From Macrostomum lignano (taxonomy: Eukaryota), in NCBI GenBank assembly GCA_002269645.1, contig NIVC01002045.1:146068-210067 (forward strand): 64,000 bases of DNA, written 5' to 3'. The translations under genes and the position numbers were made by a program. The notes beneath the pieces were generated by a model. The model made no database searches, was not told the DNA's origin, and saw nothing but the letters and a program-made list of their open reading frames with translations. Positions 13,678 through 64,000 of the stretch are shown piece after piece (positions within the stretch are counted from its first letter, which is position 1; each line of letters starts with the position of its first letter).

Positions 13678-16368
13678 ATGACGCCAGCACCGTCCACCAA
13701 GACCGAGCAGGACTTTGCCGACTGTGCATTCGGCGACTTCTGGCTGCGCAAGATGCGGACGCTCTACAAGCAGCTGGACGCTGTTGGCAACGGCTACCTG
13801 TGCCTCGACGACATGATCGAGCTGCCCACCTTGCTGCTGGACGCGTTCCCCAAGATGGCGACGGAGTCGGGAGACACGCTGGTCAAGTCAATGATTGACC
13901 TCTGGTACGGTTTTCTGTGCACCTCGGTTGACGAGGACGATCGCTGCCATCACCAGCTGCTGGAGAACGATCTCATCGAGAGCCTGAAACGGACCTTGAA
14001 CACCGGTTTCAAGGAGCACCTGTACGAGGGCCTGGTGAAGCCGCTGTTTCAAGCAGCCGATTGCGACGCTGACGGCCTCATCAGCATGCTGGAGTACAAG
14101 ACTATGATGCGAGCTTTCAAGGTGCCGGACCGGGACTCTGAGCTCATCTTCAAGCTGCAGGACACCGAGCACAAGGGCAAGATTGGCTTGGAAACTTTTC
14201 GGGCCATCTTGGCGAACTACTTCTACAGCGAAGACGAAAAGACAGGTAGGAGGTTTGGCCTCACTCCGGTCATTAGCTCGGCCTCACTCTGGTCATTAGC
14301 TCGGCCTCACTCCGGTCATTAGCTCGGCCTCACTCCGGTCATTAGCTTGTTGCACCTCACTCTGGTCATTAGCTTGGCCTCACTCCGGTCATTAGCTCGG
14401 CCTCACTCCGGTCATTAGCTTGTTGCACCTCACTCTGGTCATTAGCTTGGCCTCACTCCGGTCATTAGCTTGTTGCACCTCACTCTGGTCATTAGCTCGG
14501 CCTCACTCCGGTCATTAGCTCGGCCTCACTCCGGTCATTAGCTTGTTGCACCTCACTCTGGTCATTAGCTCGGCCTCACTCCGGTCATTAGCTTGGCCTC
14601 ACTCCGGTCATTAGCTTGTTGCACCTCACTCTGGTCATTAGCTTGGCCTCACTCTGGTCATTAGCTTGTTGCACCTCACTCTGGTCATTAGCTTGTTGCA
14701 CCTCACTCTGGTCATTAGCTTGGCCTCACTCCGGTCATTAGCTTGGCCTCACTCCGGTCATTAGCTTGTTGCACCTCACTCTGGTCATTAGCTTGGCCTC
14801 ACTCCGGTCATTAGCTCGGCCTCACTCTGGTCATTAGCTTGTTGCACCTCACTCTCTGGTCATTAGCTCGGCCTCACTCTGGTCATTAGCTTGTTGCACC
14901 TCACTCTGGTCATTAGCTTGGCCTCACTCCGGTCATTAGCTCGGCCTCACTCTGGTCATTAGCTTGTTGCACCTCACTCCGGTCATTAGCTCGGCCTCAC
15001 TCTGGTCATTAGCTTGTTGCACCTCACTCCGGTCATTAGCTCGGCCTCACTCTGGTCATTAGCTTGTTGCACCTCACTCTGGTCATTAGCTCGGCCTCAC
15101 TCCGGTCATTAGCTCGGCCTCACTCCGGTCATTAGTTCGGCCTCACTCCGGTCATTAGCTTGGCCCCCAAACGAACGCCTCCCCAACCAAAGGCCTCCGT
15201 GTATTCGGGCCGCTCATCAACTACAAGCGACCGGAGGACTTCGGCGAGGTGGCGTGCGGCCCCTGCTGGGAGGGCAAAATGCGCTGCATGTTTCGCCGAC
15301 TGGACATCACTAATGAAGGCAAAATCAGCTGCAAGGATTTCATCCAGATAGCCAGGACTTTGTCCGTGCGCAGCCACCTGGACAAGCAGCGGAGCAACGC
15401 CGTTATGAGAGCGATTTTATCGTTGTGGATCAAGTTTATTGCCGTGGACAAGGACGGTGAGACTTACGATAGTGCATGCTTACACCTGCAACAGGTGTGA
15501 CTATCAGTGCATCCTCATGATGAACCAACGCAACAGGTGTGACTACTATTAGTGCATTCTCATGGTCACCAATGCAACAGGTGTGACTATTAGTGCATTC
15601 TCATGGTCACCAATGCAACAAGTGTGACTATCAGTGCATTCTTATGGTCACCAATGCAACAGGTGTGACTATCAGTGCATTCTCATGGTCACCAATGCAA
15701 CAGGTGTGACTATCAGTGCATTCTCATGCACTTCCTACGCCAAACCCGCCTCCGACAACGCCGCCCACAGGAAAGCACTTCGCCTCCATCACGGAGAAGG
15801 AGTTCATCAAGAACATGCGCACGCTCATCAATGGGAAATTCCGTCACGAGATCGACCAATTCGGCTGGACTTTCTTCAAGGCCGTGGAAACTTCCGGTGA
15901 CGGCTACATTCAGCTGCAGGAGTACCGCAACATCCAGGAGGCCTGGGGCGTCACCAGGGAGGAGGCCGACGGGTTCTTCAAGGTGCTCGACTTGGACAAG
16001 GTGCGCTAGGGATATTGGGGAGATGGTATTTTGGTATGAAGGCTTGCAGAAAGTAGATAGAGTGGATATTTGGTAGAGCGGATATTGGGTAGAGTGGATA
16101 TTTGGTAGAGTGGATATTGGGTAGAGGGGATATCAAGTTAATGGGCATCGGAAGGAAGGCATCTTGAGCAAATGATGCATTAATGGAGATTAAGCCTGTA
16201 GGATTTGCGGAAGAGAACTGTGGAACCCCGCCTGCTCACTCCCAGGACAACCGCATCTCGTCAGACGAGTACCTGACGGCCTGGTGCGACTACTTCCTTG
16301 GCGAGGACCCGCACAGCAAGTACAAGGCCCTGTTCGGCCCCGTCATCGCCAAGCCGGCGGCGCCTTGA
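13678..16368 (+). CDS. Tandem double-domain sarcoplasmic calcium-binding protein (SCP/calexcitin/photoprotein-like EF-hand fold), ~394 aa
   Basis: Exons 13678-14245, 15193-15456, 15771-16000 and 16246-16368 total 1185 nt and are in frame. Two homologous halves each start F/CWxxKMRxxF/YxxLD and end with YF.xED...FGP. EF loops include DCDADGLISMLE, ETSGDGYIQLQE and DLDKDNRISSDE. Confidence 0.88.
14252..15165. repeat. Mixed 23/27-bp minisatellite (GGTCATTAGCTCGGCCTCACTCC / GGTCATTAGCTTGTTGCACCTCACTCT) filling SCP intron 1
   Basis: Two interspersed unit variants, starting a few nt after the donor at 14246. Confidence 0.96.
15480..15730. repeat. ~39-bp minisatellite (GCAACAGGTGTGACTATYAGTGCATTCTCATGGTCACCAAT), SCP intron 2
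   Basis: About 6 copies are visible. Confidence 0.9.
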
Positions 16369-20868: not shown

Positions 20869-21230
20869 GACTGACTGACTGACTGACTGACTGACTGACT
20901 GACTGACTGACTGACTGACTGACTGACTGACTGACTGACTGACTGACTGACTGACTGACTGACTGACTGACTGACTGACTGACTGACTGACTGACTGACT
21001 GACTGACTGACTGACTGACTGACTGACTGACTGACTGACTGACTGACTGACTGACTGACTGACTGACTGACTGACTGACTGACTGACTGACTGACTGACT
21101 GACTGACTGACTGACTGACTGACTGACTGACTGACTGACTGACTGACTGACTGACTGACTGACTGACTGACTGACTGACTGACTGACTGACTGACTGACT
21201 GACTGACTGACTGACTGACTGACTGACTGA
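20869..21230. repeat. (GACT)n microsatellite, ~90 copies
   Basis: Perfect tetranucleotide run. Confidence 0.99.
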
Positions 21231-24116: not shown

Positions 24117-27100
24117 TCAAATCTTTGAGTGCCGCAGTTGGAACCCGTTGTTGTTGCTATGCAAAATTCTGTCGCCATCATCCAGCCTGAGATTCGCCGC
24201 CGCGTCGTCCTCGCCTTCGTCTCGCCGAAGATTCGCCAGTCTCTGAAGATTTTCGCCGGACTTTGCCCGACGAATCCGACGGGCCGCTTGGCCGAAAACT
24301 TGGCCGAGGAAGCCCAGGCCGATGCCGAACATGGTGACGGCTCCAAGCCGGCCGAGAAAGTCTGTGGCCGGGTTGGCCAAGTAGGACACGGTGAGGCAGC
24401 CGCCCACGCACAGCCGCATCAGGCAGAATGACACTAGGAAGGTCAGCTCTACGACTAGCAGCAGCTGGGACCTGCGAATGAGCAGTTCATGACCACAGCT
24501 AATCAGAATGAGCAGTTCATGACCACAGCTAATCAGAATGAGCAGTTCATGACCACAGCTAATCAGAATGAGCAGTCCATGACCACAGCTAATCAGAATG
24601 AGCAGTTCATGACCACAGCTAATCAGAATGAGCAGTTCATGACCACAGCTAATCAGAATGAGCAGTTCATAACCACAGCTATCAGAATGAGCAGTTCATA
24701 ACCACAGCTAATCAGAATGAGCAGTTCATGACCACAGCTAATCAGAATGAGCAGTTCATGACCACAGCTAATCAGAATGAGCAGTTCATGACCACAGCTA
24801 ATCAGAATGAGCAGTCTATGACCACAGTTATTCAGAATGAGCAGTCCATGACCACAGATAACCAGAATGAGCAGTCCATGACCACAGATAACAAGAATGA
24901 ACAGTCCATGACCACGGCTAACCAGAATGAGCAGTCCATGACAAGATAACCAGAATGAGCAGTCCATGACAAGATAAACAGAATGAGCAGTTCATGACAA
25001 GATAACCAGAATGAGCAGTCCATGACCACAGTTATTCAGAATGAGCAGTAAAATGACCAACAGCAGCTCAAACCAACCTGAGCGGACTGTTCCCGCCGCC
25101 GGAATTTCTTAGAAACCAGCGCAACTGCAGCAGCGGGTTGGTGCACTCGCTACCGCCAATGGTGATGGTAAGCTCCGGTGCCCATCGGCAGCCGAAGAGC
25201 GACATGGCCAGGCCGAACACGCTGGCGCAGTGGTGCAGCAGCATCAGGGGTCCTTCGGTGCGGTGCAGCAGGCACCAGGCCAGGTCAAAAAGAAAATAGC
25301 CCAAGCACACGGTGAACAGGAGCCGCTCCAGGTAGTTGTAGGGCTGGCCTGGACAGTAGGGGTGAACACAGGTGCGTTATGCGTAGATGCATTAAAGCGA
25401 ATTACATGGGTGGATTAAGGATGGTTCTCACAGGTAAATTATTAACGGTTCTCACAGGTGAATTAGTGACAATTTTCTCAGGTGGATTAGGGCGATTCTC
25501 ACAGGTGGATTAGTGTTGATTCTCACAGGTGGATTAGGGCGATTCTCACGGGTGGATTAGGGTGATTCTCACAGGTGGATTAGGGCGATTCTCACGGGTG
25601 GATTAGGGTGATTCTCACAGGTGGATTAGGGCGATTCTCACAGGTGGATTAGGGGCGATTCTCACTGGTGGATTAGGGTGATTTTCACGGGTGGATTAGG
25701 GTGATTTTCATGGATTGATCAGTGGTGATTCTCACGCGGGGATTAGTGGCGACTCTCATCTGCGGATTAGGGCGCCGCTAAAAATAAAGCTTATCGAATA
25801 TAAAATCTGAAGGCATTGATTAAGCCTGTATTTACAGCCAGTAAAATTGATAGAATCGCAAAATTTCTGTGTGCTGAGGGAGCAGCTGAGACGTGCAGTA
25901 GATCCATAGACATAATCGAATTGTCGCGGATGCCAGAAACAAAGGAAAACAAGAAGTTAGAGGAAGATTAGAAAACAACATAAGAGAAATCGAATTAGAA
26001 ACAATGTACCCTTCGTAGAGGTCATGGAGGTCCAAAACAAAGTGGCCCTAAAATTAAAATGATGCTGGCCATCCAAGTTGCCAAAATAATATTAGCTGTA
26101 TTGAAAGCTGGATGCTTGACAGCGTTTAACCTCTTCCGAACTGAAGAGGATTTTATTCATCTCCGTTCCGGTCGGATGGTAAGCAGCGCTTACCATAGAC
26201 TATTCCTTTCAGCAGAATGGTTTGCTAAGTCTGTGGTCATTCCAGTCTGATAAAAAGACATTGACTATGAATAAGGCCCAAAACTAAGTCTCCATAAACT
26301 AACATAGAAAGTTTTACAGCTGAAGATTATGGCTGCACTCATGGAAGAATTTGAAAGTTTTTCCGATTCGGACTTAATGACGTCCGATGAAGAAGAAGAC
26401 ATCATGTCAGAGGACGATTATGGTGAGTCGGACGGCCAGAGCACTGCCGAAGAGACGGAAGAGCTGTCTTGGCATTCTGTAGTTGCTGGGCATGACGTGC
26501 AAGCGAATGTGCACGAGTTTCTAGGGACACCTGGACTGAATCCAGGAATTTGCGTACCTGGTGATGTTGAGCAGGCAACGTCCTTTTTTCTCGGTCTTTT
26601 TTTGTCCAATAGCCTTTTCGAAGACCTGGCAAAATGGACTAATCGAAGAGCCTGGGCGGCGATCCACTCTGTCAATGTCAACGACCTGCCTCGGAGTTTT
26701 GCGCAATGGAGAGATTGCAGTGCGAATGAAGTAAAGAAAATGTTAGGAATGTGCCTTTACATGGGTTCCAATAAAAAGGCCGAAATGAACGAGTACTGGA
26801 GCACAGACAGTTACTACAGTACGCCGTACTTTCAAGCACCTCAAGCTTCAAGCAGGACCGCTTCAAGCAGCTACTTGGTCTGCTCCGTTTCTACGATTGC
26901 GCTGAGGATCCGATTGTCAACGATCCTCTCTTTAAGATCCGTCCGTTGCTGCAGGCTTTGAAAGAGGCTTGTATTAATGTGTACAGGCCCGAGGAGGATG
27001 TGAGCGTGGATGAGTCTTTGGTGCTGTACAAAGGTCGCCTGCGCTTTAAGCAATATATTCCAACGAAGCGGGCTAAGTACGGAATAAAGCTATATTGTGC

Positions 27101-28444
27101 ATGTGAGGCCAAATCAGGCTACCTGTACAACTTCTGCATTCACTCGACCCCAGAGGAGAACCGCCGGTTCGATGAACAGTTGCAGGGAGACAATCTGTCC
27201 TTCAGTGAGAAGATTGTTGTTGAGCTCTGCTACAACTTGTTGCACCAAGGCTACCGCATCTTTGTCGATAAATGGTTCGGTTCCTATCGGCTGTCAGAGT
27301 ACCTGCTGACTCAAGGAACGCACCTGACTTGTACCGTCCGGGCCGACCGAGGTGTGCCGATTGAGCTCAGACAGCTGCACGTTCCACCTAACGACGTCGC
27401 CTTCATGCGCAAAGACGGGGTGCTGGCTGTCAAGATCGTTGAACGAAAGGAGAGTGGCCTGAAGACTCTGTATTTGCTGGACACGAAAGAGGCGGCTGAG
27501 AGGGTTCAAACCAGACGCGTGGTTCGTGGAGGAGCAGAAACAGTGGTGCAGAAGAGCAGGTCAGTTCTCACCTACAATCGGTGCATGGGTGGTGTTGACA
27601 GAATGGACAGTCATCTACAGCCTCATCTGCCAGGGAGGAAAACTACAAAGTGGTTTTTGAAGCTCGGCTTGCATCTTTTTCTTCAAATGATTCGCAACGC
27701 TTGGATTGTGTACAGCCGGTGCGGTGGAGAGAAGACGTTCGCCAAGTTTCTTGAGGCCAGCATTCGGGAGCTGGTGGAGCGTACCGGAACGAGCAGGAAG
27801 CGCCCGGCCGCTGGCATCCAGGCCGCTCCAGGTGGCCCAGTCAGTCCGCACTTTCCAACGAAGATTGTGGCGCGGGACAGTCAGCCAAGACCAACAAAGC
27901 GCTGACGTGTCTGCTACAGAGCTGGAAGCAGCAAGCGCACGATCTACTGCTGCCCTGAGTGTCCAGGGGAACCGGGGCTCTGCTTGGAAGCCTGCTTTCA
28001 GCAGTGGCATACCTGATCTTCGACTGCGATTTGGACTAAGTCTGCCTTAATGAATCTATTTGAAGGCAACTGTTCACTCGAACTTAGTCAAAATATAATG
28101 CAAGTCAGTATATTTTAATGTAGTTTGTAAGTTTACTGAGTTATTATGTTTATTTAAAGTTTAAAGTTGTCTAACACATATCACAATGTTCTTTTTTGCG
28201 TTTTGGAGTACTTTTGCATCTAAATGTACGATCTGTACGATCTGCTTACTTTTGTTTTACTTTGTTAAAATATTTTTCGTATGATTTTTTTTTCAGTCGA
28301 GTTGTTTCCAGACCGTGAATAATCTGTAGCAGATTTCAACCAACTGCGGTATAAAAGGCAAATGACAAATTTTTTATTTGGAAGGATAAAAGTAAAGCTA
28401 GTTCCTTTTTGAATAAATATTTGTCCATGACCCCTAATGGCTGA

Positions 28445-28479
<35 letters not shown>

Positions 28480-31400
28480 GTTTTGAAGAGCTGCTCAATC
28501 TGATTTTCCTAACTTCAATTCTATGGCAAGCTCTGCTTACCATAGCCGACCGGAACGGCCTGTGGCCAGCCATAGACTTATAGAGACTTTCCTCACTCGC
28601 GAAAGTTTAGGTTTGGATTGGAATGTCAGCGTGGTAAGCACTGCTTACCATCAGACTGCTGGCGGTTAAATAATAAGTATTGAATATTTATTAACTATTA
28701 ATAACTATTAATATTTAAATGCATGACGAACGCTTTTGAAAAAATACCATCGAATACCATGCTACCCTGGAATTTAAAAACTCCCATAGACACCTGGGAT
28801 AAAAATCCACACTGAATCCCATAGACACCTGGGATAAAGATCCACACTGAATCCCATAGACACCTGGGATAAAAATCCACACTGAATCCCATAGACACCT
28901 GGGATAAAAATCCACACTGAATCCCATAGACACCTGGGATAAAAATCCACACTGAATCCCATAGACACCTGGGATAAAAATCCACACTGAATCCCATAGA
29001 CACCTGGGATAAAAATCCACACTGAATCCCATAGACACCTGGGATAAAGATCCACACTGAATCCCATAGACACCTGGGATAAAAATCCACATTGAATCCC
29101 ATAGACACCTGAGATAAAAATTCCCGTTAAATCCCATAGACACCTGGGATAAAAATTCCCGTTGAATCCCATAGACACCTGGGATAAAAATTCCCGTTGA
29201 ATCCCATAGACACCTGGGATAAAAAATCCACACTGAATCCCATAGACACCTGGGATAAAAAATCCACACTGAATCCCATAGACACCTGGGATAAAAATCC
29301 ACATTGAATCCCATAGACACCTGGGATAAAAATCCCCGTTGAATCCCATAGACACCTGGGATAAAAATTCCCGGTGAATCCCATAGACACCTGGGATAAA
29401 AATCCACACTGAATCCCATAGACACCTGGCATAAAAATCACCGCTGAATCCCATAGACACCTGGGATAAAAATTCCCGGTGAATCCCATAGACACCTGGG
29501 ATAAAAATCCACACTGAATCCCATAGACACCTGGGATAAAGATCCACACTGAATCCCATAGACACCTGGGATAAAAATCCACACTGAATCCCATAGACAC
29601 CTGGGATAAAAATCCACACTGAATCCCATAGACACCTGGGATAAAAATCCACACTGAATCCCATAGACACCTGGGATAAAAATCCACACTGAATCCCATA
29701 GACACCTGGGATAAAAATCCACACTGAATCCCATAGACACCTGGGATAAAGATCCACACTGAATCCCATAGACACCTGGGATAAAAATCCACATTGAATC
29801 CCATAGACACCTGAGATAAAAATTCCCGTTAAATCCCATAGACACCTGGGATAAAAATTCCCGTTGAATCCCATAGACACCTGGGATAAAAATTCCCGTT
29901 GAATCCCATAGACACCTGGGATAAAAAATCCACACTGAATCCCATAGACACCTGGGATAAAAAATCCACACTGAATCCCATAGACACCTGGGATAAAAAT
30001 CCACATTGAATCCCATAGACACCTGGGATAAAAATCCCCGTTGAATCCCATAGACACCTGGGATAAAAATTCCCGGTGAATCCCATAGACACCTGGGATA
30101 AAAATCCACACTGAATCCCATAGACACCTGGCATAAAAATCACCGCTGAATCCCATAGACACCTGGGATAAAAATTCCCGGTGAATCCCATAGACACCTG
30201 GGATAAAAATTCCCGTTGAATCCCATAGACACCTGGGATAAAAATCCACACTGAATCCCATAGACACCTGGGATAAAAATCACCGCTGAATCCCATAGAC
30301 ACCTGGGATAAAAATCCACACTGAATCCCATAGACACCTGGGATAAAAATCCCCGTTGAATCCCATAGACACCTGGGATAAAAATCCACACTGAATCCCA
30401 TAGACACCTGGGATAAAAATTCCCGGTGAATCCCATAGACACCTGGGATAAAAAATCCACATTGAATCCCATAGACACCTGGGATAAAAATCCCCGTTGA
30501 ATACCATAGACACCTGGGATAAAAATTCCCGGTGAATCCCATAGACACCTGGGATAAAAATTCCCGTTGAATCCCATAGACACCTGGGATAAAAATCCAC
30601 ACTGAATCCAATAGACACCTGGGATAAAAATCCACACTGAATCCCATAGACACCTGGAATAAAAATCCCCACTGAATCCCATAGATACCTGGGATAAAAA
30701 TCCACACTGAATCCCATAGACACCTGGGATAAAGATCCACACTGAATCCCATAGACACCTGGGATAAAAATCCACACTGAATCCCATAGACACCTGGGAT
30801 AAAAATCCACACTGAATCCCATAGACACCTGGGATAAAAATCCACACTGAATCCCATAGACACCTGGGATAAAAATCCACACTGAATCCCATAGACACCT
30901 GGGATAAAGATCCACACTGAATCCCATAGACACCTGGGATAAAGATCCACACTGAATCCCATAGACACCTGGGATAAAAATCCACATTGAATCCCATAGA
31001 CACCTGAGATAAAAATTCCCGTTAAATCCCATAGACACCTGGGATAAAAATTCCCGTTGAATCCCATAGACACCTGGGATAAAAATTCCCGTTGAATCCC
31101 ATAGACACCTGGGATAAAAATCCACACTGAATCCAATAGACACCTGGGATAAAAATCACCACTGAATCCCATAGACACCTGGGATAAAAATCCACACGGA
31201 ATCCCATAGACACCTGGAATAAAAATCCCCATAGAATCCAATAGACACCTGGGATAAAAATCCACATTGAATCCCATAGACACCTGGGATAAAAATCCAC
31301 ACTGAATCCCATAGACACCTGGGATAAAAATCCACACTGAATCCCATAGACACCTGGGATAAAAATCCACACTGAATCCCATAGACACCTGAGATTAAAA

Positions 31401-33384
31401 TCCCCATTGAATCCCATAGACACCTGAGATTAAAATCCCCATTGAATCCCATAGACACCTGGGATAAAAATCCACATTGAATCCCATAGACACCTGAGAT
31501 AAAAATCCCCACTGAATCCCATAGACACCTGAGATAAAAATCCCCACTGAATCCCATAGACACCTGAGATTAAAATCCTCATTGAATCCCATAGACACCT
31601 GGGATAAAAATCCCCGTTGAATCCCATAGACACCTGGGATAAAAATCACCGCTGAATCCCATAGACACCTGGGATAAAAATCCACACTGAATCCCATAGA
31701 CACCTGGGATAAAGATCCACACTGAATCCCATAGACACCTGGGATAAAAATCCACATTGAATCCCATAGACACCTGAGATAAAAATTCCCGTTAAATCCC
31801 ATAGACACCTGGGATAAAAATTCCCGTTGAATCCCATAGACACCTGGGATAAAAATTCCCGTTGAATCCCATAGACACCTGGGATAAAAATTCCCGTTGA
31901 ATCCCATAGACACCTGAGATAAAAATTCCCGTTAAATCCAATAGACACCTGGGATAAAAATCACCACTGAATCCCATAGACACCTGGGATAAAAATCCAC
32001 ACTGAATCCCATAGACACCTGGAATAAAAATCCCCATAGAATCCAATAGACACCTGGGATAAAAATCCACATTGAATCCCATAGACACCTGGGATAAAAA
32101 TCCACACTGAATCCCATAGACACCTGGGATAAAAATCCACACTGAATCCCATAGACACCTGGGATAAAAATCCCCATTGAATCCCATAGACACCTGAGAT
32201 TAAAATCCCCATTGAATCCCATAGACACCTGAGATAAAAATCCCCACTGAATCCCATAGACACCTGAGATTAAAATCCCCATTGAATCCCATAGACACCT
32301 GGGATAAAAATCCCCGTTGAATCCCATAGACACCTGGGATAAAAATCACCGCTGAATCCCATAGACACCTGGGATTAAAATCCCCATTGAATCCCATAGA
32401 CACCTGGGATAAAAATCCCCGTTGAATCCCATAGACACCTGGGATAAAAATCACCGCTGAATCCCATAGACACCTGGGATAAAAATCCACATTGAATCCA
32501 ATAGACACCTGGGATAAAAATCCACACTGAATCCAATAGACACCTGGGATAAAGATCCACACTGAATCCCATAGACACCTGGAATAAAAATCCCCACTGA
32601 ATCCCATAGATACCTGGGATAAAAATCCACACTGAATCCCATAGACACCTGGGATAAAAATCCACACTGAATCCCATAGACACCTGGAATAAAAATCCCC
32701 ATTGAATCCAATAGACACCTGGGATAAAAATCACCACTGAATCCCATAGACACCTGGAATAAAAATCCCCATTGAATCCAATAGACACTTGGGATAAAAA
32801 TCACCACTGAATCCCATAGACACCTGGGATAAAAATCCCATTAAATTTCCATAGACACCTGGGATAAAAATCTCATTAAATCCCATAGACACCTGGGATA
32901 AAAATCTCATTAAATCCCATAGACACCTGGGATAAAAATCCCATTAAATTTCCATAGACACCTGGGATAAAAATCTCATTAAATCCCATAGACACCTGGG
33001 ATAAAAATCTCATTAAATCCCATAGACACCTGGGATAAAAATCCCATTAAATTCCCATAGACACCTGGGACAAAAATCCACACTGAATACGAGCTAACAA
33101 CAAACAAATGAGACAAAAATCCGCATTAAATTCTATCGATGCTCACCCTGCATTTCCCAGTAGACGGCGTTGCGCCCAAAGCTCGCCAAATCCCAGCCGG
33201 CCAGCGCCGTGACCAAGCAGGCGTGCGCCACCGTCACCATGCGGCAGCGCCATTCGCGCGAAAAATGGCGCGTGGCGCCAAACACGGCCAGAAATTTGTA
33301 GGCGCCGGTCCAGCAGGCGAAAGCGAAGGCCACTTCGGCTGCCAAGCGGCCGGTGCTGGCTGAGCAGCCGAGGTCGGCGGGCAT
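24117..33384 (-). CDS. TLCD5: TLC-domain membrane protein TLCD5/TMEM136, ~287 aa, 3 exons
   Basis: Exons 33384-33147, 25348-25078 and 24471-24117 total 864 nt, with phases 1 and 2 consistent. Motifs: EWRCRMVTVAH, GYFLFDLAWC..EGPLMLLHH, GSECTNPLLQLRWFLR, LMRLCVGG. Confidence 0.9.
24476..25050. repeat. 30-bp minisatellite (AGCAGTTCATGACCACAGCTAATCAGAATG) grading into a 27-bp variant; fills TLCD5 intron 2
   Basis: The array abuts the splice acceptor at 24472-24473. Confidence 0.96.
25400..25770. repeat. 23-bp minisatellite (GTGGATTAGGGCGATTCTCACAG), TLCD5 intron 1
   Basis: About 15 copies with degenerate flanks. Confidence 0.9.
26130..28665 (+). mobile_element. piggyBac-superfamily DNA transposon, 2536 bp, antisense within TLCD5 intron 1
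   Basis: TTAA at 26126-26129 and 28666-28669, with both ends starting CC. Subterminal inverted repeat CCGTTCCGGTCGG..ATGGTAAGCAG at ~26163-26186 vs ~28533-28558. Palindromes ATGGTAAGCAGCGCTTACCAT (26176-26196) and GTGGTAAGCACTGCTTACCAT (28631-28651). Internal transposase present. Confidence 0.88.
26329..28016 (+). pseudogene. piggyBac (PGBD4-like) DDD transposase disrupted by one frameshift and one nonsense codon
   Basis: Acidic N-terminus. Catalytic-type motifs VSVDESL (D at 27009), IFVDKWF (27267) and YNRCMGGVDRMD (27597). A 1-nt frameshift lies between 26832 and 26847. TGA at 27903-27905 falls where the first Cys of the Cys-rich domain belongs, and the frame then continues RVC...CCPECPGEPGLCLEACFQQWHT-stop (28016). 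Confidence 0.93.
28775..33090. repeat. 35-bp minisatellite, ~120 copies, ~4.3 kb (AATCCCATAGACACCTGGGATAAAAATCCACACTG), TLCD5 intron 1
   Basis: Continuous array that explains all minus-strand ORFs from 28698 to 32807. Confidence 0.99.
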
Positions 33385-41159: not shown

Positions 41160-47418
<6,259 letters not shown>

Positions 47419-48537: not shown

Positions 48538-49675
48538 GCTGTAGATAGGCACTGTAGATAGACACTGTAGATAGACACTGTAGATAGACACTGTAGATAG
48601 ACACTGTAGATAGACACTGTAGATAGACACTGTAGATAGACACTGTAGATAGACACTGTAGATAGACACTGTAGATAGACACTGTAGATAGACACTGTAG
48701 ACAGACACTGTAGATAGACACTGTAGATAACACTGTAGATAGGCACTGTAGATAGACACTGTAGATAGACAGTGTAGATAGACACTGTAGACAGGCACTG
48801 TAGATAGACACTGTTGATAGACACTGTAGATAGACACTGTAGATAGACACTGTAGATAGACACTGTAGACACTGTAGACACTGTAGATAGACACTGTAGA
48901 TAGGCACTGTAGATAGACACTGTAGATAGACACTGTAGATAGACACTGTAGATAGACACTGTAGATAGACACTGTAGATAGACACTGTAGATAGACACTG
49001 TAGATAGACACTGTAGATAGACACTGTAGATAGACACTGTAGATAGACACTGTAGATAGACAGTGTAGATAGACACTGTAGATAGACAGTGTAGATAGAC
49101 ACTGTAGATAGACACTGTAGATAGACACTGTAGATAGACACTGTAGATAGACACTGTAGATAGACACTGTAGATAGACACTGTAGATAGACACTGTAGAT
49201 AGACACTGTAGATAGGCACTGTAGATAGACACTGTAGATAGACACTGTAGATAGACAGACACTGTAGATAGACACTGTAGATAGACACTGTAGATAGACA
49301 CTGTAGATAGACACTGTAGATAGACACTGTAGATAGACACTGTAGATAGACACTGTAGATAGACCGTAGATAGACACTGTAGATAGACACTGTAGATAGA
49401 CACTGTAGATAGACACTGTAGATAGACACTGTAGATAGACACTGTAGATAGACACTGTAGATAGACACTGTAGATAGACACTGTAGATAGACACTGTAGA
49501 TAGACACTGTAGATAGACACTGTAGATAGACACTGTAGATAGACACTGTAGATAGACACTGTAGATAGACACTGTAGATAGACACTGTAGATAGACACTG
49601 TAAATAGACACTGTAGATAGACACTGTAGATAGACAGTGTAGATAGACACTGTAGATAGACACTGTAGATAGACT
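48538..49675. repeat. 13-bp minisatellite (CTGTAGATAGACA), ~87 copies
   Basis: Direct reading; it explains the ORFs at 48208-49723. Confidence 0.98.
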
Positions 49676-50202
49676 ATATTCAGCGGCTATAGAGTCCATC
49701 AAGTACTCAGTATCTGTCAGCACAGCTGATTGATCTCCGAACAGCCAGGGTCAACAAGAGCAGCAGCTCAGCCAGCTGTCAATAAGACATCGACCAGGAA
49801 GTGGGCGAGTTCTGCATACAGAGCTACTCGACGCGCTGTGCGTGACTCCGCGGAGCGACTCGCTCCCGCTGTAACCTCCGGGCCCTACAATTTGAAGCCT
49901 AGTCCGGTCCGCGCGTTCACCGCAAGAGGCTGGATTGCATGCCTGAGGCCTCGAGTTCGCGAGCCCTACCAGAATAATTAGAGAGTCTGCAGGACTGGCA
50001 GCCACTGATAAGGGGAGATTTTCCATTGCTGCTGAAATTATCAGAAGGCCTTCCACTATCTGAATCTGAATGAGCAGTTCACTGGAGTCTCGATTCACCA
50101 GTGCTTAAACATTCTGGTGTCAACATGAGAACGATGCGTATGCTTGGATAAGCACGCAGTCATACGCGCAGGCAGACACAAAAAGGTTAAACAACCAATC
50201 AA

Positions 50203-50657
50203 AACCCTAACCAAAACCAACCTAAACAAAACCCTGACCAAAACTCTAACCAACACCCTAACCAAAACCCTAACCAACACCCTAACCAACACCCTAACCA
50301 ACACCCTAATCAAAACCCTAACCAACACCCTAACCAAAACCCTAACCAACACCCTAATCAAAACCCTAACCAACACCCTAACCAAAACCCTAACCAACAC
50401 CCTAATCAAAACCCTAACCAACACCCTAATCAAAACCCTAACCAAAACCCTAACCAACACCCTAATCAAAACCCTAACCAACACCCTAACCAAAACCCTA
50501 ACCAACACCCTAATCAAAACCCTAACCAACACCCTAACCAACACCCTAACCAAAACCCTAACCAAAACCCTAACCAACACCCTAACCAAAACCCTAACCA
50601 AGACCCTAACTAAAACCGTAAACAAAACCCTAAAAAACCCTAAAAAACCCTAACCAA
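50203..50657. repeat. 12-bp telomere-like repeat (AAMACCCTAAYC) containing CCCTAA
   Basis: About 37 units, nearly all carrying CCCTAA. Confidence 0.92.
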
Positions 50658-51304
50658 TACCCCAATCCTGTCTCTCAGTTATACCTTTCGAAGACTCACT
50701 CATAAACTCTCTATTTCGACACCCCCGACTCACAGCCAGAGTCGATACAGACAGATACTTCAGGCGCATAGCGCTTGCATGCAGACACATTTAAAGGCCC
50801 ATAATCGGACTCATAAAGCTTCAAAATTTCCAAAGGGGAAGGCTACTTCATACTCATAATTGCAGCTTTTACAATAGAGCAACCATTTCTCTCTCGGTGA
50901 ATGCCGACCTCCCAGGGAATCTTTGCCGACTGAGATCAATACGGTCCATTGGCTAATCTCATACCGCTCCATTGTGCGGCCATTGCACTCGCTTGAAAAT
51001 CCGCACAGCTCACAAGCAACTTGGACACTGGAGCACTCCTGTGAGCCCGGGTGCCAGTTTTATAATGCCACTTTCCCCAGAGCGGCGCCAGTGACTGACT
51101 GGCAGGGCGCAACACTTGCTGAGAAAGGGAAGAAACCCCAATGCAGCTCAATAGGAGAGTGTCGTCTGCTCACAGCTCACTTGTCAGGGCAGCCTGGCAG
51201 GTCGCGCTGTCCAATATCTGGTGCCACTCGGCACTCGGCTATGAATTTTTAATAGCCACATTTCGCCAAGCAATCTTAATGAATGTTGTACTTATAGGCC
51301 GCTT

Positions 51305-52968: not shown

Positions 52969-55900
52969 TCACAGCACGGCGCAGCTGGAGCGCGCCAACT
53001 GGGGACAGAAGCACTTTTGTTCGTTGCCGTAGATCCACAGGGTGCCGTTTCGACCACGCCAGGTGTAATCTACCTGAGTCACGGGCACCGCGTGCAGCAC
53101 CTGGCGCTGGCGCAGGATTCGAGCCTCGGTGCGTTTTGCCTGCTCGGCGTGATAATCCAGCATGGCCTGGGACAGCTGGCGCACCTCCTTGGAGAACTGC
53201 GTCAGCGGGAGGCCCTCCGCGGCCGAGTCGGTCTCGTGCAGCAGGACGCCGGTGACCTTCGACAGGCGACTCTCCAGCAGGTCCATGCGCTCGCACATCA
53301 GCTGGTTGGACGAGATGCTGTCGCTGGAATGATGACAGCGATTTGATTGAATCGACGCGGGCGAAAGATTAAAGAAAAAATAGTGAACCAAGCTACATCT
53401 CCCGAAGATCCAAGCTACAACAGTCTTAAACACACCAAGCTACATCTCCCGAAACCCCAAGCTACAACAGTCTTAAACACACCAAGCTACATCTCCCGAA
53501 GCCCCAAGCTACAACAGTCTTAAACACACCAAGCTACATCTCCCGAAGCCCTAAGCTACGACAGTCTTAAACACACCAAGCTACATCTCCCGAAACCCCA
53601 AGCTACGACAGTCTTAAACACACCAAGCTACATCTCCCGAAACCCCAAGCTACGACAGTCTTAAACACACCAAGCTACATCTCCCGAAGCCCCAAGCTAC
53701 GACAGTCTTAAACACACCAAGCTACATCTCCCGAAGCCTCAAGCTACGACAGTCTTAAACACACCAAGCTACATCTCCCGAAACCCCAAGCTACGACAGT
53801 CTTAAACACACCAAGCTACATCTCCCGAAACCCCAAGCTACGACAGTCTTAAACACACCAAGCTACATCTCCCGAAACCCCAAGCTACGACAGTCTTAAA
53901 CACACCAAGCTACATCTCCCGAAACCCCAAGCTACGACAGTCTTAAACACACCAAGCTATATCCCACGAAACCCCGAAACCCTAAGCTACGACAATCTGT
54001 TCAGTTCACATAAACTGAAAACTCACAATCGGACGGTGAGCTGCATGTAGCGCTGCAGTTTGCCCTTTCCCAGGCAGGCCTTGCAGTGCAGGTGGCCGAC
54101 CCCGGTGCAGTAGGGGCAGCCGTACTCCCCGGTCTCGTTGCACTCGTGACACGCGTGCCGGCCGTACACCGCCTGCGACGGAAACTCCAGTCGGCGGCTG
54201 CCAGGCCCGGCGAAGTCACCGCCGAAGCAGGTATCGCAGTCGGCGCGGCCGCTGCCGTGACAGGCGACGCACACCTGCCAGCCGCGCCCGTTGCAGGCGG
54301 AGCAGAGGATCACCCTGGCCGTGCCCGGGATGGCCACGCGCTGCTCGGAGCTCTCGAACGGCCTGCCGCCCGGTCGGCACTCGATGTCCCACAGCGACTG
54401 CGGGAACTGCCGGCAGGCGTTCTTCAAGTTCTCTAGCGGCTCCACGGCCGAGTGAACGTTGCGGGTCTCGACGTACGTGTCTAGCGAGTACTGCGGACAG
54501 CGGGCAGGCTTGAGCTCTCAGACTCCGAATGCACTCCTCAAAATCTCCCATAACTTTGAGAGCTTTAATCTCTTTGGTAATGAGGCATCGAAAGCAGAGA
54601 AATTTTACATTCGTCTTAATTCTCTACTGCAGAGACTCGTCCATCATCTATCATTTTTCAAGCTCTAAAGTGATGTCGTTCATGTGAAATTTCCCTTGAG
54701 AGGCGACGAGCTAGCCAAGTGGCAAAGTGACTGGTTGGCCGCATTACCCCCTCCCGAGTTGTTATAAAATTTACGACGAAAAGTAAACCCGGAAATTCCG
54801 AAGAACCTTGCACCCCACTGAACTTGATGTATCTCTCTATTCTAATCTGGTATTCCACCTGAACCAGTGCGGCTGTGCAACCCGCAGACTCCACCAACCT
54901 GGAAAGCCCTCCGCTGGCTGATATTCCGGAATTTAATCTCTTTGATCTTGCCGCCGCACAGCAGGAAGTGCCTCCTGGCCCAGGCCTTCAAAGCGAGCCG
55001 GCACTCGTCTTCAGTGGCGGGGCTCAGACTGCAAGTTTAATTAAATGAGGGTTGAGCGCAGGTGAAAATTACTGTTAAACAAATTAATAACATATAGGCT
55101 AATTATAGGTAGCATTAGTTACGTGTCCTACAGTAGAGAACTCAAATTAGATTTGCTTTTCTTCTGAACAACTGCGAGTTGACAAAAATAATCCCTCTGA
55201 AAAGTGAAACCAATTTTCAGTCGCTAGCAACAAAGGGTGACAGAAAGCTACCCTTAAAAATAGCTGTAACTGCACACAGCTCGCCTAACGAGAGCAGGAG
55301 CGGCTCACAGTGAGGAAAAACACGGAGTAGAAGACGGAACAGAGAGGGCTGGCCTACAACTGCCTACACGCCCTCACTGGGAGCCCCAGCTGTTGGTTGT
55401 CAAAGCAACACCGACAGAGTAGAGAGGGGAGATGCAAAAGCCTGAGCATGCACGGCCGCAGGAAATTGGCTTTGAGTTGCTCAAGAGAGTACAAATCCAG
55501 CGCACGCGCCTCTCGCATGCCTTCATTCCCTATTCAAAAGTTCCCAACTCAGATCTCCGGTTCTCGTGCGCCTAAGGGAAGGACATTGCGTAGCAAACGG
55601 GTACTCTTCAAAATAGTGAAAAACATTTTCCCTAGTATAGTAGAGAGAGAAGTAGGGGACACCGGAATCCAGTTCATTCCAGTTGACACGGTCGCGGTTT
55701 GAGGGGGTGGCGCGGCGACTGTGTTTATTACGACTGGGGGCGTGGCGTGCGGTCCTGGGGCTGGACGGGATTGATGGCCCCGGAATGGTGGATTTTTTTC
55801 ATTTTTTGCTTGCGGAGAGCTCGGCCCGCCCACCACCCTGGGAGCGGAAGCGGCACTGTTTGCCAAGCCGGCAGCCAAGAGTACTTATTCGGTACAGACC

Positions 55901-58645: not shown

Positions 58646-59344
58646 GTCTTCATACTCATATGTTAGCTCACAATGTCAATGTCACAACGCCGCAAGTCAG
58701 CCGCTCAGTGCACACACACACACACACAAACGTGCACGAGGCACTTATTGGCCAAGTGTGCAAAAACTTGCACATATTGGGACTGCTCCGACACACGAAA
58801 AATCACACACACACACGTCCCCACACAGGCAATTTTCAACCCACCAAATAGATTTTTATTGACAACATGCTTTTGGCTTACTGAAAACAGTTGGAAAGCA
58901 TTTTTCGAGGTGCATTGAACTCACAACAGATTGTACATGTATACTTGTCTAAAACAGAATTAAAAAACCCTGGTGTCTTGCTGAATTCCACTAAGGCAAT
59001 AATATCAGCACGTCAAATTTCACCAGATAATTTCAGCGATCATAGATTATAGAAGACAGGATGGTAAATGGCAAGGGACTTTAAGGTTATCGAAGACAAA
59101 CGACATTGACACATATCAAAAAAATTTTACGATCTGAATAAACAAAATTTGCTACATTTAGTGCCACTGGGAAAAAACAATTCTGTAGCGAAACTCCACT
59201 GTTCATAAAAATGTACTTTATTGATTATGACACAATCACTAGAATTACTCAAAAGGTACATGTCAGCTATTCGGACCCACAGAATGCTACGTAAAGGATG
59301 CGGAAATGAACCACACTATAGCAGAAGCCAGCACACACTATAGT

Positions 59345-59640
59345 ATGGGGCTGTCCCAACAAATTCACCATAGCCAGTGTGGATAGGGCTGTCCCAACAA
59401 TTCCACCATAGCCAGTGTGGATAGGGCTGTCCCAACAATTCCACCATAGCCAGTGTGGATAGGGCTGTCCCAACAATTCAACCATAGCCAGTGTGGATAG
59501 GGCTGTCCCAACAATTCCACCATAGCCAGTGTGGATAGGGCTGTCCCAACAATTCAACCATAGCCAGTGTGGATAGGGCTGTCCCAACAATTCCACCATA
59601 GCCAGTGTGGATAGGGCTGTCCCAACAATTCCAGCATAGC
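59345..59640. repeat. 38-bp minisatellite (CCATAGCCAGTGTGGATAGGGCTGTCCCAACAATTCMA), ~7 copies
   Basis: Period 38 (59368, 59406). Confidence 0.95.
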
Positions 59641-59835
59641 TTGAAAAAGAATATACACAAATACTATAAAAAGCAAATGCTAGAGCTCTACCGCGTCATT
59701 GCACCGGATTTTATTAGAAACAGACTGCAAAAAATGCGTCCTCTAAATAATATTCCAGTGAAGCACACAGCAGTTAATCGGCTTCTCGATTCAGAAAATT
59801 AAAAAAATAACCAGCTCCGCCAAAAAACTCATGAA

Positions 59836-59859
59836 TTAACTGACTGCTGCACAGATAGC

Positions 59860-59901
<42 letters not shown>

Positions 59902-62900
59902 GGCTTGTGAGCAGCAAGTGAACCAAATGACGGATGCAGCGGCGAGATCAGAATGCTCGCTGCTGATCGTTAAAGCGCATTCTTGTCTCTTAGGCATGTC
60001 GCTGGCGTTGCTGACTTCAGAATCTGCGAGGAAAAGAAATCAATTAAGATAGGCTTGCATTAGTAATCATTAATAGGCTATAAAGGAACCCTTTAATAGA
60101 ACGTGTTCAACTAATGCTGGGTCTGTTTTGAAAAGTCAGAACTCAGAAGTAGTCGCGATTAGAATCAGTATTGTCCCAATAAGTGCGACCCAACAAATGC
60201 TGTTCAAAAAATAGGCCTGGCTGCAATTTCCCAATAAATGCCCAACAAATTACTAGCCTTGAGCTAGGCTGGGCTGTGTTTACTATTCAATGCGTTTGTA
60301 GCTTGTGTCCCAACAATGCCACTGAGATTGTTGCATTGCTTTTCAATTGTGCTCTACCAAGTAACACAAGTACTCTGGTGTACAATACTTCTACAGCAGA
60401 TAATACTCACCCAAAACAGATCGTCTCTTTCTCTTTAATCCTGTGCCGGACGGGTTTTCTTCAGATCCACCAGAAAATTCACAAATAGACTGACTGCCTG
60501 CACGGATAGCGGCTGCTGCTGCTGCGGCTTGTGAGCAGCAAGTGAAACCAAATGACGATGCAGCGGCGAGATCAGAATGCTCGCTGCTGATCGTTAAAGC
60601 GCATTCTTGTCTCTTAGGCATGTCGCTGGCGTGGCTGACTTCAGAATCTGCGAGGAAAAGAAATCAATTAAGATAGGCTTGCCTTTAGTAATCATTAATA
60701 GGCTATAAAGGAACCCTTTAATAGAACGTGTTCAACTAATGCTGGGTCTGTTTTGAAAAGTCAGAACTCAGAAGTAGTCGCGATTAGAATCAGTATTGTC
60801 CCAATAAGTGCGACCCAACAAATGCTGTTCAAAAAATAGGCCTGGCTGCAATGTCCCAATAAATGCCCAACAAATTACTAGCCTTGAGCTAGGCTGGGCT
60901 GTGTTTACTATTCAATGCGTTTGTAGCTTGTGTCCCAACAATGCCACTGAGATTGTTGCATTGCTTTTCAATTGTGCTCTACCAAGTAACACAAGTACTC
61001 TGGTGTACAATACTTCTACAGCAGATAATACTCACCCAAAACAGATCGTCTCTTTCTCTTTAATCCTGTGCCGGACGGGTTTTCTTCAGATCCACCAGAA
61101 AATTCACAAAGAGACTGACTGCCTGCACGGATAGCGGCTGCTGCTGCTGCGGCTTGTGAGCAGCAAGTGAACCAAATGACGGATGCAGCGGCGAGATCAG
61201 AATGCTCGCTGCTGATCGTTAAAGCGCATTCTTGTCTCTTAGGCATGTCGCTGGCGTGGCTGACTTCAGAATCTGCGAGGAAAAGAAATCAATTAAGATA
61301 GGCTTGCCTTTAGTAATCATTAATAGGCTATAAAGGAACCCTTTAATAGAACGTGTTCAACTAATGCTGGGTCTGTTTTGAAAAGTCAGAACTCAGAAGT
61401 AGTCGCGATTAGAATCAGTATTGTCCCAATAAGTGCGACCCAACAAATGCTGTTCAAAAAATAGGCCTGGCTGCAATGTCCCAATAAATGCCCAACAAAT
61501 TACTGCCTTGAGCTAGGCTGGGCTGTGTTTACTATTCAATGCGTTTGTAGCTTGTGTCCCAACATGCCACTGAGATTGTTGCATTGCTTTTGAATTGTGC
61601 TCTACCAAGTAACACAAGTACTCTGGTGTACAATACTTCTACAGCAGATAATACTCACCCAAAACAGATCGTCTCTTTCTCTTTAATCCTGTGCCGGACG
61701 GGTTTTCTTCAGATCCACCAGAAAATTCACAAATAGACTGACTGCCTGCACGGATAGCGGCTGCTGCTGCTGCGGCTTGTGAGCAGCAAGTGAACCAAAT
61801 GACGGATGCAGCGGCGAGATCAGAATGCTCGCTGCTGATCGTTAAAGCGCATTCTTGTCTCTTAGGCATGTCGCTGGCGTGGCTGACTTCAGAATCTGCG
61901 AGGAAAAGAAATCAATTAAGATAGGCTTGCCTTTAGTAATCATTAATAGGCTATAAAGGAACCCTTTAATAGAACGTGTTCAACTAATGCTGGGTCTGTT
62001 TTGAAAAGTCAGAACTCAGAAGTAGTCGCGATTAGAATCAGTATTGTCCCAATAAGTGCGACCCAACAAATGCTGTTCAAAAAATAGGCCTGGCTGCAAT
62101 GTCCCAATAAATGCCCAACAAATTACTAGCCTTGAGCTAGGCTGGGCTGTGTTTACTATTCAATGCGTTTGTAGCTTGTGTCCCAACAATGCCACTGAGA
62201 TTGTTGCATTGCTTTTCAATTGTGCTCTACCAAGTAACACAAGTACTCTGGTGTACAATACTTCTACAGCAGATAATACTCACCCAAAACAGATCGTCTC
62301 TTTCTCTTTAATCCTGTGCCGGACGGGTTTTCTTCAGATCCACCAGAAAATTCACAAAGAGACTGACTGCCTGCACGGATAGCGGCTGCTGCTGCTGCGG
62401 CTTGTGAGTAGCAAGTGAACCAAATGACGGATGCAGCGGCGAGATCAGAATGCTCGCTGCTGATCGTTAAAGCGCATTCTTGTCTCTTAGGCATGTCGCT
62501 GGCGTGGCTGACTTCAGAATCTGCGAGGAAAAGAAATCAATTAAGATAGGCTTGCTTTAGTAATCATTAATAGGCTATAAAGGAACCCTTTAATAGAACG
62601 TGTTCAACTAATGCTGGGTCTGTTTTGAAAAGTCAGAACTCAGAAGTAGTCGCGATTAGAATCAGTATTGTCCCAATAAGTGCGACCCAACAAATGCTGT
62701 TCAAAAAATAGGCCTGGCTGCAATGTCCCAATAAATGCCCAACAAATTACTAGCCTTGAGCTAGGCTGGGCTGTGTTTACTATTCAATGCGTTTGTAGCT
62801 TGTGTCCCAACAATGCCACTGAGATTGTTGCATTGCTTTTCAATTGTGCTCTACCAAGTAACACAAGTACTCTGGTGTACAATACTTCTACAGCAGATAA

Positions 62901-63768
62901 TACTCACCCAAAACAGATCGTCTCTTTCTCTTTAATCCTGTGCCGGACGGGTTTTCTTCAGATCCACCAGAAAATTCACAAAGAGACTGACTGCCTGCAC
63001 GGATAGCGGCTGCTGCTGCTGCGGCTTGTGAGCAGCAAGTGAACCAAATGACGGATGCAGCGGCGAGATCAGAATGCTCGCTGCTGATCGTTAAAGCGCA
63101 TTCTTGTCTCTTAGGCATGTCGCTGGCGTGGCTGACTTCAGAATCTGCGAGGAAAAGAAATCAATTAAGATAGGCTTGCTTTAGTAATCATTAATAGGCT
63201 ATAAAGGAACCCTTTAATAGAACGTGTTCAACTAATGCTGGGTCTGTTTTGAAAAGTCAGAACTCAGAAGTAGTCGCGATTAGAATCAGTATTGTCCCAA
63301 TAAGTGCGACCCAACAAATGCTGTTCAAAAAATAGGCCTGGCTGCAATGTCCCAATAAATGCCCAACAAATTACTAGCCTTGAGCTAGGCTGGGCTGTGT
63401 TTACTATTCAATGCGTTTGTAGCTTGTGTCCCAACAATGCCACTGAGATTGTTGCATTGCTTTTCAATTGTGCTCTACCAAGTAACACAAGTACTCTGGT
63501 GTACAATACTTCTACAGCAGATAATACTCACCCAAAACAGATCGTCTCTTTCTCTTTAATCCTGTGCCGGACGGGTTTTCTTCAGATCCACCAGAAAATT
63601 CACAAAGAGACTGACTGCCTGCACGGATAGCGGCTGCTGCTGCTGCGGCTTGTGAGCAGCAAGTGAACCAAATGACGGATGCAGCGGCGAGATCAGAATG
63701 CTCGCTGCTGATCGTTAAAGCGCATTCTTGTCTCTTAGGCATGTCGCTGGCGTGGCTGACTTCAGAAT
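59836..63768 (-). CDS. Putative tandem-exon gene of unknown function: six 153-nt phase-1/1 exons plus a terminal exon (5' part outside the window)
   Basis: Each unit has TTTCTTTTCCTCGCAG|AT TCT GAA...GGC A|GTCAGT. Candidate exons: 63768-63616, 63144-62992, 62520-62368, 61895-61743, 61272-61120 and 60647-60495, plus terminal 60023-59836 ending in TAA. AATAAA lies at 59715-59710. No homolog was recognised. Confidence 0.35.
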
Positions 63769-64000
63769 CTGCGAGGAAAAGAAATCAATTAAGATAGGCT
63801 TGCTTTAGTAATCATTAATAGGCTATAAAGGAACCCTTTAATAGAACGTGTTCAACTAATGCTGGTCTGTTTTGAAAAGTCAGAACTCAGAAGTAGTCGC
63901 GATTAGAATCAGTATTGTCCCAATAAGTGCGACCCAACAAATGCTGTTCAAAAAATAGGCCTGGCTGCAATGTCCCAATAAATGCCCAACAAATTACTAG
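59840..64000. repeat. Highly homogeneous 623-625-bp tandem array, >6.5 copies, continuing past the window edge
   Basis: The anchor GTGCGACCCAAC falls at 60183, 60808, 61433, 62056, 62680, 63304 and 63927. Confidence 0.99.

Follow-up and report, generated by a model that had tools for sequence, protein, structure and literature searches.

The pearl and Cg170 elements of bivalves, which derive from Helentrons, and Tetris of Drosophila virilis are non-autonomous elements whose central tandem repeats seed satellites. Tyrosine recombinases such as XerD, Cre and lambda Int share the catalytic set R...K...H/R-x-x-R...H/W-9-Y, and Crypton DNA transposons (Goodwin 2003; Kojima and Jurka 2011, PMC3212892) are elements that use an enzyme of this type. 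By definition Cryptons have no terminal inverted repeats; they carry short (4-6 bp) terminal direct repeats that act as recombination substrates. A recombinase core site consists of inverted arms around a short spacer (PMC3212892), and for the active element CryptonF-1_cRei insertion was observed to fit recombination between a brief stretch at the terminus and a target of almost the same sequence (PMC9977147). Here we compare with these systems a repetitive locus of the flatworm Macrostomum lignano that occupies one end of a 64-kb window (the whole stretch analysed, 64,000 nucleotides of contig NIVC01002045.1, assembly GCA_002269645.1), where an exon-intron unit of 624 bp is repeated in tandem. 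Coordinates are window positions, and the array and the element that contains it are read on the minus strand. We put at about three in four the probability that the segment from 58732 to 64000, and beyond the window edge, is the 3' two-thirds of one copy of a non-autonomous, probably Crypton-like transposon. The literature searched contained neither a description of this architecture for Cryptons nor a paper linking Cryptons to Macrostomum or describing the repeat.

The 624-bp period lies above the 500-bp limit of Tandem Repeats Finder (TRF), and the array was resolved instead by repeat finding and BLAST. In an exact motif scan the window contains the 20-mer TTGATTTCTTTTCCTCGCAG seven times in all, each time on the minus strand, with start positions 63788, 63164, 62540, 61915, 61292, 60667 and 60043, a spacing of 623-625 bp; this bears out the strong acceptor that had been seen in every unit when the DNA was first read without database searches (the sequence-only reading). 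That reading had also placed a donor, GTCAGT, 153 nt past the acceptor, and had predicted a symmetric phase-1 exon encoding a repeat of about 51 amino acids (aa). GTCAGT is indeed present exactly at +153 from every acceptor, but the sole open frame in the unit, which translates as SEVSHASDMPKRQ...AIRAG (repeat peptide SEVSHASDMPKRQECALTISSEHSDLAAASVIWFTCCSQAAAAAAAIRAG), continues for a further 84 nt to a consensus donor at +237, TTTTGG^GTGAGTAT, in 6/6 full units (the caret marks a splice site or an element border). The exon is 237 nt or 79 codons long, it is phase 1-1 as predicted, and its peptide ends ...GLKRKRRSVL. The other 387 nt of the unit have the full look of an intron, which opens with GTGAGT and closes with a pyrimidine tract and an AG, TACTAAA lying some 40 nt ahead of this acceptor. 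Exon copy 1 lies at 63532-63768, between an acceptor ...CCTCGCAG^ and a donor G^GTGAGTAT, with the weak GTCAGT donor after 63616, and is followed by copies 2 (62908-63144), 3 (62284-62520, with a Cys to Tyr change at 62409), 4 (61659-61895), 5 (61036-61272) and 6 (60411-60647). The last of these carries, at 60547-60556, the compensating -1/+1 indel pair that the sequence-only reading had noticed. The intron at 63145-63531, which contains TT[AG]TTGGGAC three times, is representative, the same module lying between all exons, and a truncated unit (the 3' part of an intron) at 63789-64000 shows that the array and the 5' part of the element extend past the window edge.

Published annotation of the Mlig_3_7 assembly (the BOX15_Mlig models) was built from RNA-seq with STAR, StringTie and TACO together with a mapped de novo transcriptome, ORFs (open reading frames) being called by TransDecoder (PMC5730564). 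A protein search with two spliced units returned 30 clusters, all from M. lignano, so that what had been taken for an unrecognised gene proves to be annotated already as BOX15_Mlig029855g1 to g39 and others (the copy numbering reaches Mlig029855g39), in about 30 UniProt clusters. All of the 16 NCBI models retrieved read through the GTCAGT site and join units as ...KRKRRSVL^D^SEVS... or with A in place of D, a junction made by the GTGAGT donor at +237 and a CGCAG acceptor. The residue at the junction follows the acceptor allele, AG^AT giving D and AG^CT giving A, as predicted by a GT-AG junction at exactly these positions. The published annotation, being guided by transcripts, therefore supports serial splicing of the units, but by way of the +237 donor and not through GTCAGT as the sequence-only reading had proposed. 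The junction that GTCAGT would give, IRAG^N/T^SEVS, is found only in UniProt models of the older ML2 assembly, which alone also use an acceptor CAGCAG^CG and a donor ACCC^GTCCGG as alternative sites. A Pfam search with the repeat peptide gave only sub-threshold noise (Bd3614_N, Kinocilin). The Caenorhabditis remanei protein P0034 (KAF1756050.1) was considered as a relative on the strength of a unit-profile match (E = 1.7e-7), which is probably due to chance or low complexity. This protein is 565 aa long with a 59-aa tandem unit (...SKRLRSILPADVSERSD...), was matched over nine stretches and shows a curious junction-like similarity, KR.RS.L/..VS.

The contigs that encode the gene models (loci L001 onward) were compared with the window copy, the group of which we call family A; a diverged relative, family C, is described below. 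Array units of 620-655 bp are found at at least nine distinct loci, with 6 to at least 19 units per array. Wherever ends are visible the arrays are flanked by a left arm of 2.46 kb and a right arm of 1.1 kb. The array of family A begins at unit position 88 behind the left arm, which is AT-rich and contains no ORF of 150 aa or more, and at each locus its last member is one and the same diverged terminal copy, beyond which come some 240 bp, then a minisatellite with a 38-bp unit and then some 720 bp of right arm. Between loci the homology breaks off at the same nucleotide on both sides and the outer flanks are unrelated. Complete family A copies measure 8,014 bp (L001) and 9,840 bp (L002), an element range of 8-10 kb. 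Five 5' ends and seven 3' ends, the window's included, are identical: the 5' end reads ...(GT)n GTTT^GTGCATTAGGCATTTCTTGGGAC... and the 3' end ...AAGTGCCTCGTGCAC^GTTT(GT)n..., and the borders of every copy can be written (GT)n-GTTT^GTGCATTAGG...CGTGCAC^GTTT-(GT)n, with the 3'-terminal sequence ...CCTCGTGCAC. GTTT(G) stands directly at 8/8 5' ends and 10/10 3' ends examined, in each case in a GT microsatellite. A 9-bp sequence, GTGTGCATG, near both flanks of L001 was rejected as a target-site duplication, as it is not reproduced in other copies. Long self-standing arrays of the kind that characterize satellite DNA are not what is seen, the arrays sitting between constant left and right arms, and we are highly confident that they belong to a dispersed element. 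A single host gene is not compatible with the same array inside a bounded element at so many unrelated loci, and the sequence-only reading had itself named an identical unit at many unrelated loci as the observation that would count against it.

In the window the array runs into a diverged terminal exon (59836-60023) with an expanded GCA run, a 1-nt deletion relative to L001 and a TAA at 59838-59836; its product ends ...AICAAVS here and ...SQLIDEFSGRAGYFLSF in L001. An AATAAA at 59710-59715 is kept in the window, L001 and L002. The GCA run, the TAA and the AATAAA had all been reported before as peculiarities of the last copy; they are confirmed as features but are not specific to this locus, being retained in other copies of the element. 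The 38-bp minisatellite (59348-59640, 7.7 copies, the motif TTGTTGGGAC in each unit) is common to families A and C and varies between insertions from 3 to about 12 copies (window, L001, L002 and L012 compared). It is followed by the element's 3' terminal region (58732-59347), about 98% identical to that of family C, the last 38 nt of which make up the inverted terminus, ...AAGTGCCTCGTGCAC, an imperfect one. Position 58732 is the final nucleotide of the element, and GTTT (58728-58731) and then (GT)8, together 58712-58731, form a putative crossover core and target; GTTT and a GT microsatellite are found at both ends of every copy. No sequence is shared with the element in the window outside 58712-64000, and an Rfam scan of the window at gathering thresholds gave no match.

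Positions 4-42 of the 5' end and of the 3' end of the element form an inverted match of 38 nt (28/38). The inverted-end score is 29 compared with 15.4 +/- 2.2 in shuffled sequences, and 0/1000 shuffles reach 29 (z about 6). When the ends are joined, AAGTGCCTCGTGCAC-GTTT-GTGCATTAGGCATTT, they give 15-nt inverted arms (12/15) around a short spacer. The motif TT[AGC]TTGGGAC belongs to the 5' arm (GGCATTTCTTGGGAC), where it occurs once, and recurs three times in each intron and once in each minisatellite unit; there are 26 occurrences in the 5.3 kb of element versus one in the other 58.7 kb of the window, in a single orientation. Each intron also has a 21-nt inverted match, at 90%, to the 5' subterminal sequence. 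Taken together the intron arm motifs and the subterminal match indicate that the non-coding part of the unit is composed of terminus-like sequence.

The exon shows no sign of being maintained as coding sequence. Distinct changes were counted among 93 complete units drawn from nine arrays, with the GCA microsatellite left aside: 14 substitutions and 12 indels in the exon (225 nt), 25 and 23 in the intron (387 nt). The densities are equal (Fisher p = 1.0 for substitutions and 0.86 for indels). The exon substitutions comprise 4 synonymous, 9 non-synonymous and 1 nonsense change, the neutral expectation being 23.5% synonymous. The nonsense change (TGG to TAG) has spread to 11/15 units of one array (L003), which shows that within-array homogenization ignores the reading frame, and 34/111 family A units are broken, 77/111 being intact. 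Indels had been described as lying outside the exon, and the window indels (61564, 61504, +G at unit position 609 and about 63863) do so, but the pattern is not significant there (p = 0.09) and vanishes in the 93 units. Judged from these comparisons purifying selection is absent on the family A exon, the frame of which drifts neutrally, and a functional repeat protein finds no support in the variation.

Repeats built to the same plan turned up in an exhaustive profile search, in two further M. lignano families that are diverged sisters of family A. The unit of family B, 80 aa long, is about 52% identical; no NCBI model or contig was found for this family. Family C also has an 80-aa unit, ASEVESSADAS...ANAKRKRRSAQ, and the SEV start and KRKRRS end are kept in all three families. 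Family C is represented by an RNA-guided NCBI model of 971 aa (BOX15_Mlig014457g5), identically encoded on six contigs, and at loci L012 to L014 it forms a 14.3-kb element with the same (GT)n-GTTT borders. The ends of the two families agree at 108/110 nt (5') and 713/730 nt (3'). Family C shares the 38-bp minisatellite with family A and has 9-10 repeats of a module of 655 bp; the exon of this module (240 nt, phase 1-1) starts AG^CTTCTGAAGTC and ends CGATCTG...G^GTGAG, matching family A, and its intron again has three arm-like motifs. Identity between the A and C modules is about 60-70% in exon and intron alike, which is probably saturated and so uninformative on constraint; the exon borders are nonetheless kept in this homologous module that has diverged by about 35%. 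The last acceptor of family C opens a single uninterrupted exon of 879 codons in frame with the array, the only long ORF in the 14.3-kb element (L012 11074-13746). Its first 60 or so codons are a copy of the repeat exon. The terminal exon of family A (59836-60023 in the window) is homologous to the start of this ORF, shortened, and stops after 60-80 codons where that of family C goes on for 879. An amplified 3' end of a gene, the other earlier suggestion, comes close for the window copy, but the 879-codon gene of the autonomous relative has the array as its 5' part. Repeat exons are intact in 24/26 cases in family C versus 77/111 in family A in the same assembly (Fisher p = 0.024, with the proviso that the three family C copies are near-identical and hence not independent). 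It should be mentioned that in two of the three family C copies one repeat exon (9796-10034 in both L012 and L014) has 239 rather than 240 nt, which is either a real frameshift that the two share, and that would inactivate them if the exon is not skipped, or an error that recurred in the assembly. Family A shares its termini with a coding partner and lacks that partner's ORF, as a non-autonomous derivative should, and we consider it quite likely that families A and C are a non-autonomous/autonomous pair.

The 879-aa protein has two C2H2-like fingers and, in order towards its C-terminus, the motifs RRRSSEISQ (R-x2-E), GKRGRSVPI (GK-x2-R-x-VP), RFLRKH (R-x-x-R-x-H) and HLGHDITVHRQFY (LGH-(9)-Y). 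The motif spacings resemble those of the tyrosine-recombinase catalytic set, with an H-to-Y spacing of 9. In hhalign comparisons with XerC, XerD, lambda Int, Cre, FimB and FimE there was one match, which placed the LLGH...Y box on HLGHDITVHRQFY. Pfam detected no reverse transcriptase in the ORF, and a match in the PDB to designed Kelch proteins was dismissed as spurious.

These findings suggest the following scheme. The array would have arisen by tandem duplication of an exon-intron-exon segment in the element's own gene, after which unequal exchange would change its copy number and homogenize its units. In the autonomous element the module would have to stay symmetric and open because the downstream ORF depends on every unit; family A would have lost this ORF and retained the ends, and its exons, though still spliced, would be left to drift neutrally. 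The 879-aa protein would be a tyrosine recombinase, and the element would move in Crypton-like fashion via a circular form, the circle junction ...AAGTGCCTCGTGCAC-GTTT-GTGCATTAGGCATTT... presenting inverted arms around a short core that recombines with GT microsatellites; the family C protein would mobilize family A in trans. The same GTTT(G) at both ends, together with the joined inverted arms, gives a DNA anatomy that fits a recombinase better than a cut-and-paste enzyme, and we regard the element as Crypton-like with moderate confidence, leaning slightly towards the tyrosine-recombinase mechanism. If it is correct, the intron motif GGCATTTATTGGGAC would be a candidate recombinase-binding site. 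More tentatively still, and we are doubtful on the point, the elements could represent an undescribed flatworm Crypton-like lineage that targets GT microsatellites and in which amplification was selected at the DNA level, for its three arm copies per intron, forcing the exon to be symmetric and open.

Several observations weigh against the reading of the locus as part of a Crypton-like transposon. A promoter and a first exon were not found. All six window exons are intact, one by virtue of the compensated indel pair, and the same frame is open in three families that have otherwise diverged, a hint that coding constraint acts now or acted in the past. Since Mlig_3_7 was assembled from long reads, many of the 1-nt frameshifts among the broken units may be errors; the substitution pattern and the spread stop are independent of indel errors. 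At the ends, GTTT and (GT)n could belong to the element itself instead of being core and target, and the 38-nt imperfect inverted ends have no counterpart in Cryptons, which are without terminal inverted repeats, although they are readable as recombinase-binding arms. As to the protein, sequence searches of Pfam, NCBIfam, PHROGs and the PDB gave no match that identifies it, the hhalign match is weak (P = 0.048), and a single-sequence AlphaFold2 model has a predicted local distance difference test score (pLDDT) of 37 and is unusable.

The intact window exons would also suit a host gene, or the 3' end of one, with an amplified symmetric exon encoding a functional repeat protein, for instance a polyprotein that is secreted and processed at KRKRR by a convertase of the furin type; the serial splicing in the annotated models, the label 'Secreted protein' on some UniProt models and the conservation of KRKRRS and the SEV start across families A, B and C point the same way. 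We nevertheless regard this as very unlikely given the fixed-end element at at least nine unrelated loci, an exon as variable as the intron with its 4 synonymous, 9 non-synonymous and 1 stop changes, a stop that has spread through one array and the 34/111 broken units. Moreover, the hydrophobic 'signal-like' segment present in every unit is absent from family C, no N-terminal signal-peptide exon was found, and in family C the repeats do not make up a peptide precursor but run into the 879-aa ORF. As a processing site the repeated KRKRR is less likely than as a relic or a signal for nuclear import. An ordinary non-coding satellite with an accidental frame and splice motifs, dispersed by segmental duplication, is extremely improbable. 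By our estimate it is not rare for a 624-bp unit to have some 85 codons open by chance, tandem repeats crowd the window and large fractions of the M. lignano assembly are duplicated (PMC5730564), but consensus GTGAGT, branch-point-like TACTAAA, a pyrimidine tract and AG are not only present but used by RNA-guided models, a module diverged by about 35% keeps its exon borders and feeds an 879-codon ORF, and segmental duplication would not produce homology that stops everywhere at the same nucleotide between unrelated flanks.

There remains the question of what moves the element. It could be a non-autonomous terminal-inverted-repeat element served by a DDE transposase encoded elsewhere, or the 879-aa protein could have been captured from the host or be a transposase of a new kind. 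The 38-nt inverted ends and the reiterated subterminal motif are what many cut-and-paste elements have, the flanking GTTT could have arisen by duplication of a 4-bp target site, and the protein, as said, matches no recombinase profile. Against this, GTTT(G) is identical at 12/12 ends and always in a GT microsatellite, for which a site-specific core is the better fit; the 879-aa ORF is the only long one in the 14.3-kb relative; and it has the pattern R...GK..R.VP...RxxR.H...LGH-9-Y, with its sole hhalign match on the catalytic-tyrosine box. We therefore consider mobility by other than a tyrosine recombinase unlikely, though less so than a host gene or a satellite. Other classes of mobile element were rejected on their termini and coding content: a Helitron or Helentron (wrong termini, no Rep/Hel ORF) and a DIRS/Ngaro retroelement (wrong termini, no reverse transcriptase ORF).

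If the Crypton-like assignment holds, M. lignano, a model animal for transgenesis, harbours a recently active element that targets microsatellites, and a site-specific integrase with a defined short target could be of interest for transgenesis in this species. The architecture would be unusual, the in-frame exon array also multiplying terminal-arm motifs so that cis sites and coding exons of a transposon are amplified as one unit. For annotation the consequence is that about 40 M. lignano 'hypothetical protein' genes, with several strange fusion models (among them Rho-GAP, UCH and cadherin), are fragments of a single transposon family and should be masked or relabelled; equally, a 'satellite with splice sites' may be a genuine spliced array and still no host gene. 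Two family A copies lie within host genes, one in a myosin heavy-chain gene on the same strand (L004 5443-14783, NIVC01001124) and one in a TIR-domain gene on the opposite strand (L002 6204-16043, NIVC01000257). Copies in host introns could be exonized, given their strong splice sites and symmetric exons, and the UniProt fusions with cadherin, or those named Rho-GAP, UCH, BAF250, DRIM or Dymeclin, may be such exonized copies.

The window is unusually rich in micro- and minisatellites (95 TRF rows), many of which make long spurious ORFs. They include a 35-bp unit repeated 123 times (28782-33088), 1.3 kb of (AGTC)n (42706-43985), (GACT)90 (20869-21230) and a 13-bp unit repeated 87 times (48539-49674). 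Telomere-like interstitial arrays are found at 50200-50662 (CAAAACCCTAAC x39) and, outside the window, at L012 17920-18614 (ACCTAAACCCTAACCC x45), just past the family C element. Two adjacent ORFs at 26329-27905 on the plus strand encode a piggyBac-type transposase (PF13843, E = 4e-43); a relation of the array to this transposase was rejected, nothing being shared with the element outside 58712-64000. Probable host exons or ORFs encode an AAA ATPase fragment (14-514, minus strand), an EF-hand protein (13657-14322, plus), a Myb/SANT-like protein (PF13873; 19672-20733, plus) and a Cys-rich CXXCXGXG-like protein (54023-54445, minus).

Among described systems the element resembles Cryptons in having a single intron-containing gene without reverse transcriptase, in being a multi-copy element with unrelated flanks and in the canonical order of the R...K...R.H...H-9-Y motifs of the 879-aa protein. 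Its GTTT(G), present at both ends and near-identical to the target, recalls the CACCG/CAYCG of Chlamydomonas, and circularization would bring its ends together as inverted arms around a short spacer. It differs from Cryptons in the inverted ends discussed above, in that no sequence profile recognizes the 879-aa protein as a tyrosine recombinase, in its target, a GT microsatellite, and in the 5' part of its gene, where an exon-intron module with terminus-like motifs is repeated 6- to 19-fold in tandem. Tandem exon duplication in host genes likewise yields exons that are phase 1-1, a multiple of three in length, duplicated together with their intron and spliced in series, but here the exon is carried at many loci by a mobile element, is free of purifying selection in family A and, in the autonomous relative, encodes the N-terminal repeat region of the element's own protein. 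With pearl, Cg170 and Tetris the element has in common conserved arms around a variable tandem array, microsatellites at or near the ends, a unit related to the termini and a presence at many loci. It is set apart from them by termini that are of neither Helitron nor foldback type and by a repeat unit that is a spliced exon-intron module drawn from the element's own coding gene.

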